64,000 nucleotides of DNA from Octopus vulgaris (Eukaryota): assembly GCA_951406725.2 (NCBI GenBank), contig OX597829.1, positions 31,496,001-31,560,000 on the forward strand, given 5' to 3'. Below are positions 1,880 to 61,857 of this stretch, in pieces. The translations under genes and the position numbers were made by a program. The stretch's first letter is position 1. Every line of letters begins with the position of its first letter. The notes under the pieces are model-generated. The model was not told the origin of the DNA, did not search any database, and saw nothing but the letters and a program-made list of their open reading frames with translations.

Positions 1880-2820
1880 CAGCAATCTCACACGGATTCC
1901 CAAACACCTCCCACATCCAACTGCCTCCCTTTCACCTACATACCGGCATACCACCTACCGCGGTATTCCCACCACGTACACACCATGCAAATACCCATAC
2001 ACACTGTTCAACTCATTACTCACTTCACACATCATTACACACACACACACACACACCTTCCCACTCCACACACACCGAAAACTTCTCAGCACCCATACTA
2101 CACCCCACACACCATTGTCCACACACCCACACACAATCTTCAATAGCGTCACCACACATACCACTATACGAGTAACTACACACACTGTTAAACTTAGTAC
2201 ACACACCACACACCATCATGCACACTCCCATACTAACACAAGTACATAACGCATTGACACAGACAATATATACACACACGCATAAACATACACAACACTC
2301 ATAAACACATGCAACACGCATAGACAAAGATAATTTCTCCCACAGACATACACTATATACATGCACACGATTTAGTCACAGGCACACACACATGTACACA
2401 CACCATCTGAACCGGCACATATCAACTGCTAAACACAACACACACATGCACGCGCAAACACACACACACACACACGCGCATGCACACACGTACAAACATA
2501 CACGCACGTACACGTTAGACTCGCCCTCATTCACACACTCACGTTAGACTCACTCGTCCCCATTCATACATACACACTCACACACACCATTCTCACATAC
2601 ACACTCACACACACCATTCTCACATACACACATACGCTGGCGCACCTTAGTTCGTTGGATATCACCATTACCTTTACCGTTATTGTTATTTTTATTATCT
2701 CCCTTTCATTCAACTTCCTTCTTCCAGTCAAATCGCCATGCTGGACCATTGAACTCTGCACATTTTTTCACTATACGTTTTTTTCTTTTTCATTCTCTCC
2801 CCATTTTTGTCCTCTTAATC

Positions 2821-2856
2821 CTTTCTGTCGAAGAATGTAGGCTCAAAATGTAAAAG
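2821..2856 (+). ncRNA. Decayed hammerhead-like motif (U6 family)
   Basis: cttt CTGTCGA a gaat-gtag-gctc AAAA tg TA aaag; G12 and stem II are mutated. Confidence 0.5.
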
Positions 2857-2945
2857 ATTTTTAGATTTTTCCTGAGCGTTAAACTAATACACCTGCTTGT
2901 TGTTCCTACACCCGTCTTCGTCTTTTGTTTTCTGTAAAGTTGAAC

Positions 2946-9654: not shown

Positions 9655-9850
9655 AACGGGAAGCTTTAAAATAAACAAAAGACGAAGGCAGGTGGAAAAC
9701 AAACGAACAATTGTATTAGTATGGCGCTCATGAAATATAAATAAAACAAGTCTTTAACGTTTCGAGCCTACGCTCTTCAACAGAAAGATACACAGAGAGA
9801 GAAAAACACAGAAAGAAGGAGAGAAAAAAAATGCGTGCAGTAGCTAACGA
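9655..9850 (-). mobile_element. Solo pLTR of the Neptune-type PLE
   Basis: Nearly identical to 16607-16805 (I see one 2-nt indel and one substitution); 3' end abuts (TA)n. Confidence 0.9.
9751..9788 (-). ncRNA. Minimal type I hammerhead-like motif, CUGUUGA core
   Basis: tcttt CTGTTGA a gagc-gtag-gctc GAAA cg TT aaaga. Confidence 0.7.
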
Positions 9851-15802: not shown

Positions 15803-16030
15803 CGCATATTTACCATTTGAATATGGCTAACCCCTAAGGGTGGATGCTACTGTAGTTTGTAGCCCCAGGAAGATATCTCCTCCAGCTGGCTATAGACACA
15901 CTATCTGTGCCCTATCAGTATTTGTGAAGGGAAGTCATCCTTCCCGTCTTCAACTTATGATACACACGGACTCGAGTTTCAAGGTGTTTACCTTTCGTCA
16001 GCGTGTGACAATCATAGTTGTCGACGAGAA
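15799..16030 (-). mobile_element. Solo pLTR-like unit carrying a hammerhead, between (TA)n tracts
   Basis: About 230 bp non-repetitive unit flanked by (TA)n on both sides; contains the motif at 15963-16007. Confidence 0.7.
15963..16007 (-). ncRNA. Type I hammerhead ribozyme, canonical core
   Basis: cacacg CTGACGA aaggt-aaac-acctt GAAA ctcgag TC cgtgtg: 6-bp stem I, 5-bp stem II, palindromic stem III, GUC triplet. Confidence 0.9.
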
Positions 16031-16580: not shown

Positions 16581-16705
16581 ATATATATATATATATATAT
16601 ATATATAACGGGAAGCTTTATGAAAATAAACAAAAGACGAAGGCAGGTGGAAAACAAACGAACAATTGTATTAGTATGGCGCTCAGGAAATATAAATAAA
16701 ACAAG

Positions 16706-16743
16706 TCTTTAACGTTTCGAGCCTACGCTCTTCAACAGAAAGA
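16706..16743 (-). ncRNA. Minimal type I hammerhead-like motif in the pLTR, CUGUUGA core
   Basis: tcttt CTGTTGA a gagc-gtag-gctc GAAA cg TT aaaga; AACGTT palindrome at stem III. Confidence 0.75.
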
Positions 16744-17569
16744 TACACAGAGAGAGAAAAACACAGAAAGAAGGAGAGAAAAAAATGCGTGCAGTAGCTA
16801 ACGAATCAACATGGCGATCTGATTTCGGCCAGAGGTCAAAGATCAAACATGAGACGCGAGAGCGAAATAAGGGGAGATAATAGGGTTGATAAAGGGGTTG
16901 AGGGACCAGCTAAAAGTGCGTGGGAGGGGTCTGGATGTATGTATGTATAGGGTTGGTGTATGTATTAGTATGTATAAGGGTGTGTGTGTGTATGAGAGAG
17001 TATTAGTGCGTAAGATTGGTCTGGACGTGCGTATGTATGGGGTTGGTGTATGTATTAGTATGTATTAGTATGTATTAGTACGTATTGGTATGTATAGGTG
17101 TGTGTGTGTGTGTGAGAGAGAGTATAAGTGCGTATGCGGGGTCTGGACGTGTGTATGTATAGGGTTGGTGTAAGTATTAGTATGTACTAGTATGTATTAG
17201 TACGTATTAGTATGTATTAGTTGGTGTGTGTATTAGTATGGCACATCATATGTGATGTGATGTGTAAAGTCATGTGGTGTAGTGAGGAAAGAAGAGGGGG
17301 AGGGGGAGAAGAGGGGGGAGAGAAGGGGAGGGGAAGAAGAGGGGGAGGAGAGGATGGGGAGAAGGAAGGGGATGAGGGGGATGAGGGGGATGAAGGAGGA
17401 AAGAGGGAGAGGGGGAGAGAGAAGGGGAGAGAGGGAGTGAGGGAGCAGAGGGAAGGGGAAGAGGGAGGGAGAAAGAGGGAAAAGGGAAGGGGAGTAGGGG
17501 TGAAAGGATGAAGGACTGAAGAAGTAGGGGTCGGGGGAGAAAGGATAGGTGAGGAGGGGGAGAGGGGGG

Positions 17570-19224
17570 TTAGATGAGGAGGGGGGAGAGTTGAGACCAA
17601 ATGGCGTATAAGAGCGAAGAGAGAAGATTAATTCCTGTTCACGGCGCAAACGGGAATCCGGATGGCCTCTGTGTAAGGACAAACCGAACACAGATAGGTG
17701 TTGCAAGGAGTGACCGGTGGAGCGGAAATGGCGTGAGACCGGTGTGTCGTTCGCAAGGTGGATGTCACGAAGGTGTTCCGCGAACCGGTCAGCCAAGCGG
17801 CGTCCCGTTTGTCCGATGTACAAGGAATTGCAGAGAGAGCAAGAGATGCAATAGATAATATTGCTGGAGGTGCAGGTGAAGGAGTGGATGATGGGATAGG
17901 GTCGATGGTGGGTGCTAGTGAGGCGGGTGGTGTTGGAGAGGTAAGGGCAAGTGCGGCAACGTGGGCGGGAGCAGGGGAACGAGCCGGGTTGGGAGGTAGG
18001 GTCAGGGAAGGAGCTATGGACCAAAAGATCTCGAAGGTTGTGGGCTCGTTTGAAAGAGGGGAGGGGTCGGTTAGGGAAGAGGTGTGAAGTGGACGGGTCG
18101 GACTGGAGATGACGGAAAGCTCGAAGAATGGTGCGTTGGAGACGTAGGGCCGTGGGGTGGTAAGTGAGGGGAAAAGGGAGGCGGGAGACTACAGGGCGGG
18201 TTCGGGGAGAGAGAGCAGATACACGGTCCACGGACCGTGCTCTGGCAAGGGCAGTGTGGATAGTGGTGAGGGGGTATCCACGTAGGGTGAAGTGGTGAGC
18301 CATACGTTGAGACTGAGTCTCAAAGTCATGGTCGTCACTACAGAGCCTACGTAGACGGAGGAATTGGGAATAGGGGATGGAAAGCTTGGTGTGTTCTGGG
18401 TGGGAGGAAGAGAAGTTGAGGTATGAGTGTGAGTCTGTGTGTTTGTAGTGAATGGAGGTGGTAAGAGTGGAGTGAAGAATGCTAACCGAAATGTCGAGGA
18501 AGGAGACAGAGGTGTTGGAGATAGTGGAAGTGAAGTGGAGGGCTGGATGGAAAGATTGGACGAAAGAGAGGAAGGAATCTAGATGTTCGCGGGAGAGTGA
18601 GGTGGCACCGATAATGTCGTCAATATAACGACCATATAGTTCAGGAGTGGGACCAGTGAAATTAGAGAATATTTGGGCCTCAACATAGCCAACGAACAGG
18701 TTCGCATAGTTGGGGCCCATTCGCGTTCCCATGGCCACTCCCGAGACCTGATGGTAGAACTCGCCCGCGAACGAGAAGCAGTTCAGAGTAAGGACAAGTT
18801 CGGCCAGACGAATGAGTGTGGAGGTGTCAGGTACAGGGTTAGAGCGGAGGTCAAGAAAGTGTCGAAGGGCCTGCAGTCCTTCGTGGTGAGGGATAACAGT
18901 ATAGAGGCTTTGGATGTCCATAGTAAAGAGGATTTTGGAGGAGCCGGGAGGAAAGGAGAAAGAGTTGAAAAGCCGGAGAGCATGGTTGGTATCGTGGATG
19001 TGGGAGGGAAGAGATGCCACTAGGGGGGCAAGGACACGGTCGAGGTATTTAGAGATGAGCTCCGTGGGGCAGTTACAGGCGGAGACGATGGGGCGGCCAG
19101 GGTTGTTGGGTTTGTGGATTTTGGGGAGGAAGTAAATGGTGGGGGGTACGTGGGGTTCGCACACTTAGGTTGGATGCGGTGCGGGGGAGACGGGAGGACG
19201 AGATGAGGTCTTGGACAGTAGAGG

Positions 19225-19225
<1 letters not shown>
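17570..19225 (-). CDS. PLE reverse transcriptase-GIY-YIG endonuclease polyprotein (5'-partial; two 1-nt indels in G runs)
   Basis: YFLPKIHK, GRPIVS, MDIQSLYT, GVAMGTRMGP, RYIDD, FLDI, CSRPRCRTC, IYCISCSLCNSLYIGQT, REQELI, GLN; the ORF track gives 17233-19164. Confidence 0.93.
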
Positions 19226-36317: not shown

Positions 36318-36513
36318 ACACACATATAGTTGAAATTTACAGAAAAACAAAAGATTAAAACAGGTGTATGAACAACAAACAGGTGTATTAGTTTGACGCT
36401 CGGGAAAGTGAGAAAGTCTTTTAGGTTTCGAGCCTACGCTCTTCAACAGAAAGGAATAACGGAAAATAAACAGAGAATAAAAAAAAAAACTTGTGGATTT
36501 AGCGATAAACATA
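36318..36513 (-). mobile_element. Solo pLTR, Neptune-family subfamily
   Basis: Homologous to 16607-16805 and 53745-53950; abuts (CA)n. Confidence 0.85.
36418..36453 (-). ncRNA. Hammerhead-like motif (U6 family), stem III mutated
   Basis: cttt CTGTTGA a gagc-gtag-gctc GAAA cc TA aaag. Confidence 0.6.
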
Positions 36514-41924: not shown

Positions 41925-44600
41925 ATATTTTTTCTCTAGTTTCAGCTCAGAGCTGTGGCCATGCTGGTGCACCGCCGTTTTGCTACACTGTTATTACTAA
42001 GAGCCTCGTCTAATATGTGGCACTTGATGAAACATGGAGTTTGATATAGCTACCCTCATTTGCACCTCTTGCCGTAAGGTAGGTCCATCTGGGACTCTCG
42101 ACAGGAAGAGGTCCAGCTTTGATTTTTAAAAAAACCCTACATCTACTTTGTGCAAGTTCCTCAGACTCTTTGAGAGAATATTAAAAAGCTGTGGGCCCTT
42201 GAAACCCAGGTTGTTGCAGTAACTGGTCCTGAAGCGTGATGGCATTGCTGGGATCTTTAGCACTATACAGTGTCGTCCCGTTCTGGCATTGGTGTAGCTT
42301 TCAATGCCAAAATTTGGCACAATTCCTTCCAAGATCTTCCAGATATATATTACTGCATACATCTCTCGTCTTCTCTCCAGCGAGTAGAGTCTTAACTGTT
42401 TCAACCTTTCCCAGTAGCTGAGCTGTTACAAAGAGACGATCTTCTTTGGGAATCTTCTCTGGATTGCTTCAAGGTCCGCTGTTAATTTCACACTGGTGGG
42501 TGACCATATCTGTGAGCAGTAATCCAGGCGGCTGAGGACGAATGTCCGCCAGAGGACCATCATGTTTCCTTATCTCTGGTTCTGAATGTTCTTAGGATCC
42601 AGCCAGCCAGTCGTCTGCATTTTGTCGTCATCCTGGTAATGTGCACTTGGAAAGAGTTATTATCACTCATATCGATACCCAGGTCCCTCACTGACTTAGG
42701 CTCTGGGATTGAAATTCCCTGTGGACCAGTGTACCCTGTAAGTTTCATATTCAGTTTTGGATGCTGGTAGCGCAGGGCTTGGAATTTTTCAGCATTAAAC
42801 TGCATATTATTATCCTCAGCCCATCTGTAAATTGAGTCCAACTCCTGCTGCAGGTGTGTAACATCGCTGGGGTTCTGTATTTTCAGCGAGACTTTCGAAT
42901 CATCTGCATTGCTTGCAAAGGTGGCTATTCGGGCATTTGAGGGCATATCTGAGAGAGCACTATAAAAAGGAGTGGCCCCAAGACAGTGCCCTGTGGAACA
43001 CCGCTCACTATTTGTGTGTTCATAGAGGTGGTTCCATTAGCCACTACTGCCTGACTCCTATCTTTCAGGAAGTCATGTAACCACTCTCCAAGTTTTCCAG
43101 CTATGCCAAGGTCACGCATATCATACCATGATCCACCTTGTCAAAAGCTTGCAAAATCAAGGTATATTACGTCCACATTTGATTTGTTGAGTAACTGCCT
43201 CAACACCCAGTCATAATGTTGTAAGAGTTGGGTCAGGCAGCTCCTACCTGGTCGAAAACCATGCTGGGTATCACTCAGCAAGTTGTTTTCTTCAAGGAAT
43301 GCGATTAGTTTCCCTCTGACTATCCGTTCCATGACTTTGCTGTTGTGTGAAGCCAGAGATATAGGCCTATAGTTTTTAGCATCTGCTCTACTTCCCCCTT
43401 TATGTATTGGGTATATTATACCCTCCTTCAGCTTGCTTGGCAGTTTGCCATTTGTAAGAAAGCTCTGGAAGAGAATCTGGAGGGGTTTTTCCAGAGCATG
43501 CTTACACGATTTGAGGAGGATTGCTAGGAAACCATCAGGACCATCAGTTGAGTTTGTGTCCACTTCATCTATGGCTAGTAGTATATCTTCTTTGCTAATG
43601 TCAATGTATTCCATTGTAACTGCCTCGCTGGTTATAGGTGAGGCGGCAAAGAAGTCCACTGGTTCGTTCAACGGGGTGGTAAAGACTGGTCATTCAGTAT
43701 CTCACTGATCTTAGTTGGACTGTCTGTGAGGGAGCCATCCTTTTGAATGAGGGGTCCAATCTTGTAGTGTACTGAGGCTGTTTCTTTCGTGTAATGAAAG
43801 AAGGCCTTTGGGTTTGACTTAATGTTTTTTATAATCCAGGCTTCTTTGTCTACTTTCTCCCTCACATAGGATTGTTGCAGCCTTTTTTCGATCTCCATCA
43901 GTGTTGTTTTTAGGCGGGACGTTTCGCTACTTTGGGATGTTGGTTGAGTCGATTTGCAACCTTCGTCCGTCGTCTCATGAGAATCTTCCGCTCCCTTGGA
44001 ATCTTGCTCCTATTTGTTTTGGCCTTGTGCGCTGGGACATATTTCTGGAATACGGCTTGCACAGAAGACATGAAACATTCTAGTTTCATGTCAATGTCTG
44101 GTGTGGAGAGACATTTCGGCCAGTCCTCTCTGAGGATCTCTTCTTGGATCGATTTCCAATCTGCTTTGTGGAAGTTCAGATTGGAGAGATTTCGGGTGCT
44201 TCCTTTAGGCTGTATGTCTCTGGTTACTTTCGGCCCAAACATAGACAGCTCTATTATGTTGTGATCCGAGACTAATGTCGGTGTCACTTTCACATCATGA
44301 ATGATGTCCTTATTGTTCGTGAAGCAGAGATCCAGAATGTTATTCGCCCTAGTTGGTCTGAGTACAGCTTGCTCCATGAAAAGGGCATTGGTGAGGTTGA
44401 GCAGGGACTCCACCTGTGCTTGCTTACAATGAGTAATTCCTGAGAGTATGAGACCTTTGGGCCATTTGACGTTGGAGAAGTTGAAATCACCATAATAAAT
44501 ATGGTCACGTGGTATTCCAGATTCATGAGGATTTCTTTAATTCTTGTGAGGCAATCTTCAAACTTGCCTATGTGGTTTGGAGCATCTGGTAGGCAATATG
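41925..44600 (-). mobile_element. CR1-type LINE, 5'-truncated in the APE domain, ORF2 pseudogene
   Basis: GDFN, PTRANNILDL, SDHN, GPDG, NYRPISL, QHGFRPGRSC, DFAKAFD, SGVPQGTVLGP, ADD, YSLERRRE; many frameshifts. Confidence 0.93.
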
Positions 44601-44953: not shown

Positions 44954-45143
44954 GACCTCGTGTGTACCGTTGGCGATTTTTTTTCCTGTCTTCCCTTCTC
45001 TGGATCTTTCCTTCTCCTATGTTTCCGACGAAGAGCTCCGTTCGAAACATTAAACCCTCCTTCCTTCCTGAGCGTCCAATAATACTATATTTGTTCCACG
45101 TCGTCGCGTTGTTGTGTTTTTTTGTGCTTTCTTGTTTGCATTA

Positions 45144-53744: not shown

Positions 53745-53950
53745 TGGAGTTGAAATTTAAAGAAAAACAAAAGACGAAGACAGGTGTATGAACAACAAGC
53801 AGGTGTAATAGTTTGATGCCTGAGAAAGTGAGAAAGTCTTTACGTTCCCAGAAAGTCTTTTACGTTTCGAGCGTACGCTCCTCAACAGGAAGGAATAAGA
53901 GAAAATAAGAAGAGAGAGAATTTTAAAAAAACTTGTAGATTTAGCGGTCA
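53745..53950 (-). mobile_element. Solo pLTR, Neptune-family subfamily
   Basis: Homologous to 36318-36513. Confidence 0.85.
53857..53892 (-). ncRNA. Hammerhead-like motif (U6 family)
   Basis: cttc CTGTTGA g gagc-gtac-gctc GAAA cg TA aaag. Confidence 0.6.
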
Positions 53951-55477: not shown

Positions 55478-55564
55478 AGTACAAACAAACAATTGTATTA
55501 GTATGGCGCTCAGGAATAGAAATAAAACAAGTCTTTTACATTTCGAGCCAACGCTCTTCGACAG

Positions 55565-55567
<3 letters not shown>
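55478..55567 (-). mobile_element. Neptune pLTR fragment with a hammerhead-like motif at 55533-55567
   Basis: ttt CTGTCGA a gagc-gttg-gctc GAAA tg TA aaag; AACAATTGTATTAGTATGGCGCTCAGGAA is identical to the 16607 pLTR. Confidence 0.8.
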
Positions 55568-55619
<52 letters not shown>

Positions 55620-61464: not shown

Positions 61465-61630
61465 GGTCCCCGGTTGATTCGGGGTTAACCACAGTAAATA
61501 AGGTACTCAATACATAGCAGAGTAAAATTAATTTATTATATAGAAGGAGCTTCTACAGGACTAGAACTGTTTCATTCAAGAGAAATCTTCCCCTTGAATG
61601 AAACAGTTCTAGTCCTGTAGAAGCTCCTTC

Positions 61631-61663
<33 letters not shown>

Positions 61664-61857
61664 GAAGGAGCTTCTACAGGACTAGAACTGTTTCATTCAA
61701 AAGAAATCATCAGGAAGCTCCTGATGATTTCTGATGATTTCTTTTGAATGGAACAGTTCTAGCCCTGTAGAAGCTCCTTCTATAAAATAAATTAATTTAC
61801 TCTGCTATGTATTGAGTACCTTATTTACTGTGGTTAACCCCGACTCAACCCGGGACC

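Follow-up and report, generated by a model that had tools for sequence, protein, structure and literature searches.

The window analysed here is a 64,000-nt stretch of Octopus vulgaris contig OX597829.1 (positions 31,496,001 to 31,560,000). On its minus strand, at 16608..19225, lies a 5'-truncated copy of a Neptune-like Penelope-like element (PLE), ~2.6 kb long and flanked at either end by (TA)n/(GTAT)n microsatellite. The copy carries a 643-residue open frame (P0001; 17233..19164, minus strand) in which an RVT_1 domain is followed by a CSRPRCRTC linker, a C-terminal GIY-YIG block and a low-complexity P/S/L-rich tail, and from which the N-terminal ~250-380 residues are missing relative to its 890-930-residue relatives. 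RVT_1 scores 33.1 bits, above its cutoff, and GIY-YIG 17.8 bits, below its cutoff, with the motif YIGQTGR visible. The linker has the form CX4CXXC and sits upstream of the GIY-YIG block, in keeping with the zinc-finger-like CX2-5CxxC linker between RT and EN that is found in Neptune and is common to Nematis (PMC8557442). Judged by this domain layout, the element is a Neptune-like PLE of the Neptune/Nematis type, in agreement with the initial annotation; the closest database proteins, 45-59% identical to P0001 and originating from molluscs and a coral, carry no clade names. The last ~120 residues of the open frame (17233-17600, minus strand), which would make up the tail past GIY-YIG, correspond to an imperfect purine-rich repeat (TRF periods 9-56).

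On the same strand, ~490 nt past the 3' end of the RT and GIY-YIG frame, is a motif of the minimal-hammerhead type (16706..16743, minus strand), recognized by reading the sequence and by pattern matches and assigned to subfamily X4, as described below. In related elements this distance is 80-280 nt; it is longer here because a 122-nt tandem repeat (2.3 copies; 16958..17231, unstranded) separates the stop codon of the ORF from the motif within the 3' UTR. Past the cleavage-site position, a 3'-terminal region (16608..16705, minus strand) contains the conserved boxes CCUGAGCG and ACUAAUACA, and the copy ends at (TA)n ~98 nt past the motif. The tandem repeat is full of ACUAAUACA-like 10-mers; in families X and Y that word is also a conserved box, placed ~30-45 nt beyond the motif on its 3' side. 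The motif had initially been placed in a pLTR; in this copy it occupies the 3' UTR of one lone 5'-truncated element, not a demonstrated pLTR pair.

The minus strand of 16706-16743 reads UCUUU-CUGUUGA-A-GAGC-GUAG-GCUC-GAAA-CGU-U/AAAGA, where the slash marks the cleavage-site position. Stem I is formed by UCUUU and AAAGA and is followed by the 5' core CUGUUGA (C3 U4 G5 U6 U7 G8 A9), one unpaired A (9a), and a 4-bp stem II (GAGC/GCUC) with the loop GUAG. The 3' core G12 A13 A14 then continues without a loop into A15.1 C15.2 G16.2 U16.1, and H17 is U. Since ACGU is palindromic, helix III can form only in a dimer, and the A15.1-U16.1 pair is formable only in trans. The layout is that of the minimal hammerhead (min-HHR) of PLEs, except for the U at core position 6. 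The adenine normally found there, A6, is an essential residue of the hammerhead core and part of its U-turn. Measured against the consensus 5' box C3 U4 G5 A6 N7 G8 A9, the other six positions fit, and position 6 is U in every X subfamily consensus. On the 3' side, the core is GAAA followed by ACGU, and the subfamily consensi have A or U, not G, at H17.

Among 15 motifs drawn from X, Y and their relatives, the A at 9a, the G10.1-C11.1 pair and C15.2 are invariant in all 15, whereas G16.2 is G in 14 and A in the decayed copy at 45021. The extra purine after A9 and the palindromic ACGU, which the initial annotation treated as peculiar to these copies, are present, with A as the consensus purine, but they are already published: an extra nucleotide after A9, the G10.1-C11.1 pair, a palindromic 15.2-16.2 and dependence on dimers are hallmarks of PLE min-HHRs (PMC4209133). 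The catalytic boxes of the published descriptor are unmatched, with CUGUNGA in place of CUGANGA. An Rfam scan of the whole window at the gathering score returned no hammerhead and only spurious miRNA matches on microsatellites, and a scan of a 71-nt slice around the motif at E <= 10 likewise gave no hammerhead match. The miss of 16706-16743 was expected, because the motif has no stem III hairpin.

Copies of the motif recur along the window. The pattern of stem II plus GAAAC matches six times against 0.33 expected from shuffles, and T at position 6 (CTGTYGA versus the canonical CTGANGA) is indeed found in the six copies first reported, at 2825 (plus strand) and at 9777, 16732, 36443, 53882 and 55558 (all minus). 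At 9751..9788 (minus, U6) an X4 copy, a short 3' end truncated on its 5' side, matches the 16732 copy at 96% identity across 227 nt. Two copies are of the X5 type, both minus and U6: one at 36417..36454, with A17 and ACGU decayed to ACCU, and one at 53856..53893, which is decayed, with stem I CUUC, G at 9a and loop GUAC. The X4b-type copy at 55532..55569 (minus; U6, C7) is 5'-truncated inside stem I beside (TA)n, and its loop GUUG and its GAAAU represent decay. An X5-like copy at 2820..2857 (plus; U6, C7) is also decayed, with stem II GAAU and G12 changed to A. The loops GTAC and GTTG, once taken as family variation, are thus single-copy decay; the family loop is GUAG, with 20,734 genomic matches when GUAG is held fixed. 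Apart from the host element, the window copies amount to 100-230 nt of 5'-truncated 3' end adjoining (TA)n or (CA)n; the consensi of the subfamilies stop at the same two microsatellites, in line with a (TA)n insertion bias. A more distant copy at 45020..45056 (plus) belongs to the sister family Y and has stem I GUUU/AAAC and the core CCGACGA, in which A6 is kept and U4 is replaced by C.

Other repeats in the window include non-LTR (LINE-like) retrotransposon fragments at 42560-44536 (minus), which lie in separate frames and comprise an Exo_endo_phos_2 piece (43910-44536, minus) and two RVT_1 pieces (43141-43689 and 42560-43036, minus). A near-perfect 87-nt hairpin at 61604-61690, with arms of ~30 nt and a (TA)n loop, gives the best, spurious, miRNA-family scores on both strands and possibly represents the ends of a small inverted-repeat element.

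The state of position 6 was counted across the genome (2.8 Gb, 227 contigs), where counts of exact patterns are lower bounds. The exact pattern CTGNNGANGAGCNNNNGCTCGAAA has 26,062 matches, with T at position 6 in 24,598 (94.4%), A in 566 (2.2%) and C or G in 898 (3.4%, by subtraction). A second pattern, with stem I, stem II and the loop held constant and any base allowed in both 8-nt core boxes, gives 20,734 matches; the first 100 of these divide into 94 with T6, 3 with A6 and 3 with C6, and show subfamily-level variation at N7 and H17 only. A share of 94.4% therefore makes U6 the source state of family X. The initial annotation had argued for a source consensus as opposed to decay, and had named a genome-wide A6 consensus as the outcome that would speak against it; the genome-wide consensus is U6, in every X subfamily.

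The A6 matches are of two kinds, scattered T-to-A mutants of U6 subfamilies and members of the distinct sister family Y. We considered whether the A6 copies within X might descend from an ancestral A6 master, but the spectrum in X5 resembles decay and speaks against this: the first 100 of 892 X5 matches have T in 81, C in 11, A in 7 and G in 1. Three A6 mutant X5 copies are found together in a 0.7-Mb interval (G000:C1:3.46-4.12 Mb), and contig 1 has 6 of the genome's 566 A6 matches in its first 5 Mb. These clustered copies possibly reflect segmental duplication or a very small local A6 sub-lineage.

Clustering on -45..+125 nt around the motif divides family X into at least five subfamilies, which are told apart by their flanks. 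X1 has A7; X2 has G7 and mostly U17; X3 has C7; X4/X4b has U7 or C7 and U17 or A17, and includes 16706-16743; and X5, with U7 or C7 and the upstream word 'CUUAUUC', is the most decayed- or oldest-looking. The consensi describe the ~215-nt non-coding 3' end and were built from 3-16 copies each, the X5 sample being enriched for A6 by the draw. Similarity to RT/EN is found upstream in 11 of the 67 genomic copies examined, one of which (L056) is in partial tandem. Individual copies are 2-11% away from the consensus of their subfamily, and the protein sequences of X4 copies share 97-100% identity with P0001, so U6 elements amplified in several waves, some of them recent. Two X2 copies are inverted ~150 nt apart (G000:C1:1878301-1878480; L045/L046), an arrangement of the inverted 5'-truncated type described for PLEs, and similar close inverted pairs occur in family Z.

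The sister family Y, with ~300 exact copies, has the form GUUU-CUGAAGA-A-GAGC-GUUU/GUCU-GCUC-GAAACGUY-AAAC and carries A6. It has stem II, the 9a A, ACGU and the downstream CCUGAGCG and CUAAUAC boxes in common with X. The 45021 copy belongs to it, and the compensated stem I that was initially noted there is real, but its CCGACGA is not the typical core, since the Y consensus is CUGAAGA/CUGACGA. Family Z is represented in the window by 15963-16007 (minus), CACACG-CUGACGA-AAGGU-AAAC-ACCUU-GAAAC-UCGA-GU-C-CGUGUG, a canonical type I hammerhead with A6 that scores 28.6 bits with Rfam Hammerhead_1 (E = 1.3e-5), below the gathering score of 34. The core given for the family as a whole is the canonical CUGAUGA, with a 2-bp stem III and a palindromic loop. 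Z has 200 exact, very uniform copies genome-wide, some of them in pairs ~350 nt apart on one strand, and in this spacing and uniformity it looks retrozyme-like. Compared with ~300 exact copies of Y and ~200 of Z, X has more than 24,000.

Outside this genome, the ORF relatives (45-59% identity) carry the same kind of motif 3' of the ORF. Two of them, L102 (CUGACGA) and L103 from the coral Oculina patagonica (CUGAUGA), share the whole architecture of X but have A6. Three relatives from other assemblies instead have CCGACGA, with U4 changed to C in an otherwise perfect min-HHR (L099:5277-5314, L100:4876-4913 and L101:3065-3102); in L099 this core is present in both the direct and the inverted copy, and it is the same core as in the Y copy at 45020-45056. 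Whether C4 is the master state is blurred because C4-G5 is a CpG, whose decay would give the canonical CUGA.

Position by position, the X motif is homologous to the canonical A6 motifs of the sister family and of relatives elsewhere. Unlike X, families Y and Z and the relatives L102 and L103 all keep A6 (CUGAAGA, CUGACGA, CUGAUGA); U6 is therefore derived and specific to lineage X. On this comparison of sequences, the A6-to-U change is placed before the radiation of X, which gave at least five subfamilies and copies in the tens of thousands.

What happened to the motif after this change can be read from its divergence relative to the flanks. Between X subfamily consensi, the 38-nt motif differs by 3-8%, the downstream flank by 10-30% plus indels, and the upstream flank by 23-58%; between X and Y the corresponding values are 18-24%, 42-51% and 53-72%, the upstream figures being inflated in each case because the flanks are T-rich and hard to align. 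At the master level, variation within X is confined to the outermost position of stem I, to N7, where all four bases occur, and to H17 (A or U). These are the places that the rules of the hammerhead leave free: N7, H17 and the end of stem I. At least five master-level substitutions all fall in the ~9 of 38 positions that can change freely, for which we estimate a chance of ~0.001-0.01. No X subfamily departs from the catalytic residues G5, G8 and G12 or from the A9/G12-A13-A14 boxes. In the 15 motifs of X, Y and relatives, 89.6% of cells are paired and five of nine pairs show double changes, versus at most 49% in slid controls, which describes a three-way junction with base-paired and covarying stems I and II. 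Between X and Y, stem I has changed by a compensated pair, C-G to G-C, as had been proposed.

By these measures, the motif stayed under hammerhead-like constraint after A6 became U. Could the conservation instead be that of a neutral relic, in which the change killed a dispensable ribozyme and the remaining similarity stems from a short time since the split or from hitch-hiking with neighbouring boxes? There is some precedent, as another PLE inserts in vitro without any need for hammerhead cleavage and whole PLE clades are without canonical hammerheads; Naiad PLEs, for example, thrive without them (PMC8557442). Conservation is also not unique to the motif, given that the 3' boxes CCUGAGCG and ACUAAUACA are conserved between X and Y too. 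Nonetheless, the motif is 3-5 times less diverged than the adjoining sequence in the same subfamily comparisons, the substitutions are restricted to the free positions, and stem I changed by a compensated pair, all of which makes a neutral relic improbable. With two independent changes in the clade, A6 to U in X and U4 to C in relatives, and the rest of the core invariant, the sequences suggest that constraint on the U-turn specifically has been relaxed.

Folding adds a further consideration. In the minimum-free-energy structures of U6 motifs, an extra helix forms between U4-G5-U6(-U7) and (A14-)A15.1-C15.2-G16.2. Relative to the open junction it gains 2.4-2.8 kcal/mol in U7 copies, 1.2 kcal/mol in a G7 copy that also carries G12-to-A, and only 0.2 kcal/mol where intact A7 and C7 copies were folded. 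Among natural A6 copies, L007 of family X takes up the open junction, and the extra helix is likewise absent from the rest of those tested. In theory, U6 could have been fixed for the sake of this pairing, yielding a rod-like hairpin that serves as a closed monomer or as a new protein-binding hairpin. The gain in U7 subfamilies and the absence of the helix from A6 copies would be in accordance with such a fold, but next to nothing is gained in A7 and C7 copies with an intact motif, covariation of N7 with A14 is absent, the motif region has an unremarkable fold z-score (-0.91), and the unpaired core residues are invariant, which a plain hairpin would not need. We regard this explanation as very unlikely. 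Two ways of restoring a canonical core within the U6 motif were also discarded: a bulged U6 with N7 standing in for A6, since any of the four bases can occur at N7, and a shifted UUGAAGA core, because two bases would be left between stem II and G12. RNAcofold of two motifs gave a fully intermolecular duplex only, the method being unable to represent a domain-swapped hammerhead dimer.

Cleavage in vivo might be expected to leave a trace in the genome, since copying of cut RNA would produce many insertions that start exactly at position 1.1. Of 30 X copies anchored just 3' of the site (4,919 matches), 29 continue across the entire motif and not one begins at the site; for family Y, with A6, the figure is 0 of 21. 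As Y is as negative as X, the test does not separate U6 from A6, and a pile-up of 5' ends was set aside as a discriminator of in vivo cleavage, as a route of cleavage and religation (circle) would leave no mark. What the counts do indicate is that X and Y alike are copied from uncut, or religated, RNA.

Published work on other hammerheads bears on the activity to be expected. Comprehensive mutagenesis found that all single and double mutants of the CUGA turn have low activity, except for the C3-G8 swap (PMC9901934), and a natural A6C variant in phage Bcep176 cleaves with a kobs below 0.1/min (PMC3088659). In PAc, a Poseidon PLE of Anolis, catalytic mutants of the hammerhead leave insertion unaffected and cleavage needs protein (PMC11167929). 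By analogy with these systems, we infer that self-cleavage of the U6 motif is strongly attenuated. The opposing explanation is that CUGUNGA cleaves sufficiently in its native context, where a domain-swapped dimer built on the ACGU palindrome and assistance by RT-EN would allow U6 to be tolerated or compensated. In its favour, every core residue but position 6 is invariant at the master level, with N7 and H17 alone drifting as they do in working hammerheads; natural core variants such as A6C of Bcep176 can keep detectable activity; and since PLE min-HHRs cleave slowly in vitro in any case and can be helped by protein, a further loss might matter little. Against it stand the mutagenesis, in which no active CUGA-turn mutant was found besides the C3-G8 swap, the lack of any candidate compensating change accompanying U6 (X and Y otherwise differ in stem I, loop II and H17 only), the fact that no genomic copy starts at the cleavage site, and the competing helix that U6 adds in the monomer. 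On balance, an active variant, slow or protein-assisted, is less likely than not.

The explanation we favour, with about even confidence, is that the motif is a selected, hammerhead-derived three-way-junction module in the 3' region of the PLE RNA, whose cleavage would be strongly attenuated and not needed for copying. In the X master lineage, the U-turn residue A6 would have changed to U before the subfamilies radiated, and the U6 RNA would still fold as a hammerhead-type three-way junction. The module may have been kept for a role in the RNA or RNP of the element, ~100-125 nt upstream of the copy ends, which are presumably where reverse transcription starts. Extrapolating from other hammerheads, self-cleavage of the U6 version would be at least 100-fold below that of the A6 version and would not be required for retrotransposition. 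The invariance of G5, G8, G12 and A9/G12-A13-A14 is equally predicted by continued catalysis and in this respect counts against attenuation. That the fold is kept for recognition by RT, as was initially suggested, is pure conjecture.

The motif and its setting closely resemble the metazoan PLE min-HHRs described by Cervera and De la Pena (2014; PMC4209133). Both are type I, with a short stem I of 4-5 bp, an unpaired nucleotide between 9 and 10.1 and a G10.1-C11.1 pair; both lack hairpin III and have a palindromic ACGU that implies dimers; both lie in the terminal repeat or 3' region of elements with RT and GIY-YIG; and both form consensus families of thousands of mostly solitary, 5'-truncated copies. 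They differ in the U6 of the X consensus, as the sole core variant in the text of that paper is a U3-A8 covariation. Its descriptor fixed CUGANGA and therefore would have missed family X. The Bcep176 hammerhead (Perreault et al. 2011; PMC3088659) is similar in being a natural variant that persists without A6, with low but detectable activity, whereas it is a single bacterial-phage locus with C6 and full stems, and X is U6 in a eukaryotic repeat family. The PAc element of Anolis carolinensis (PMC11167929) is comparable in that its hammerhead lies ~100 nt upstream of an internal start of reverse transcription, in its AT-rich insertion, and in that uncleaved RNA is the template and cleavage is unneeded for insertion in vitro, much as X copies run through the site into (TA)n. 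Unlike X, it has a canonical core, belongs to the Penelope/Poseidon clade and has a hammerhead that overlaps the ORF start.

A literature search for U6 or C4 core strings combined with 'hammerhead' or with cephalopods, which did not extend to the large 2017 catalogue of PLE hammerhead variants by Lunse, Weinberg and Breaker, returned nothing relevant. No published record of a U6 family consensus was found in the papers covered, and a prior listing in that catalogue is possible. As a practical warning, descriptors with a fixed CUGANGA and Rfam models both miss family X.

The role of hammerheads in PLEs is an open question, as they are conserved across the canonical clades, yet slow in vitro and, in the one system so far reconstituted, dispensable for insertion. 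Lineage X, in which the core adenine has been replaced, is by far the most successful PLE family in this genome, and its canonical-core sister lineages are small. X thus bears on whether PLEs need self-cleavage, and it offers a natural pair of U6 and A6 motifs in the same genetic background. If the U6 motif is dead, its role would lie outside cleavage; should it be active, the consensus used in hammerhead searches is too narrow. We think it rather unlikely that CUGUNGA is a working core, in which U6 supports site-specific cleavage in the dimeric, protein-assisted setting of a PLE RNA. Were this the case, the 'invariant' U-turn would, together with the U4-to-C cores, prove replaceable in nature, and descriptor-based censuses would have missed tens of thousands of ribozymes per genome.
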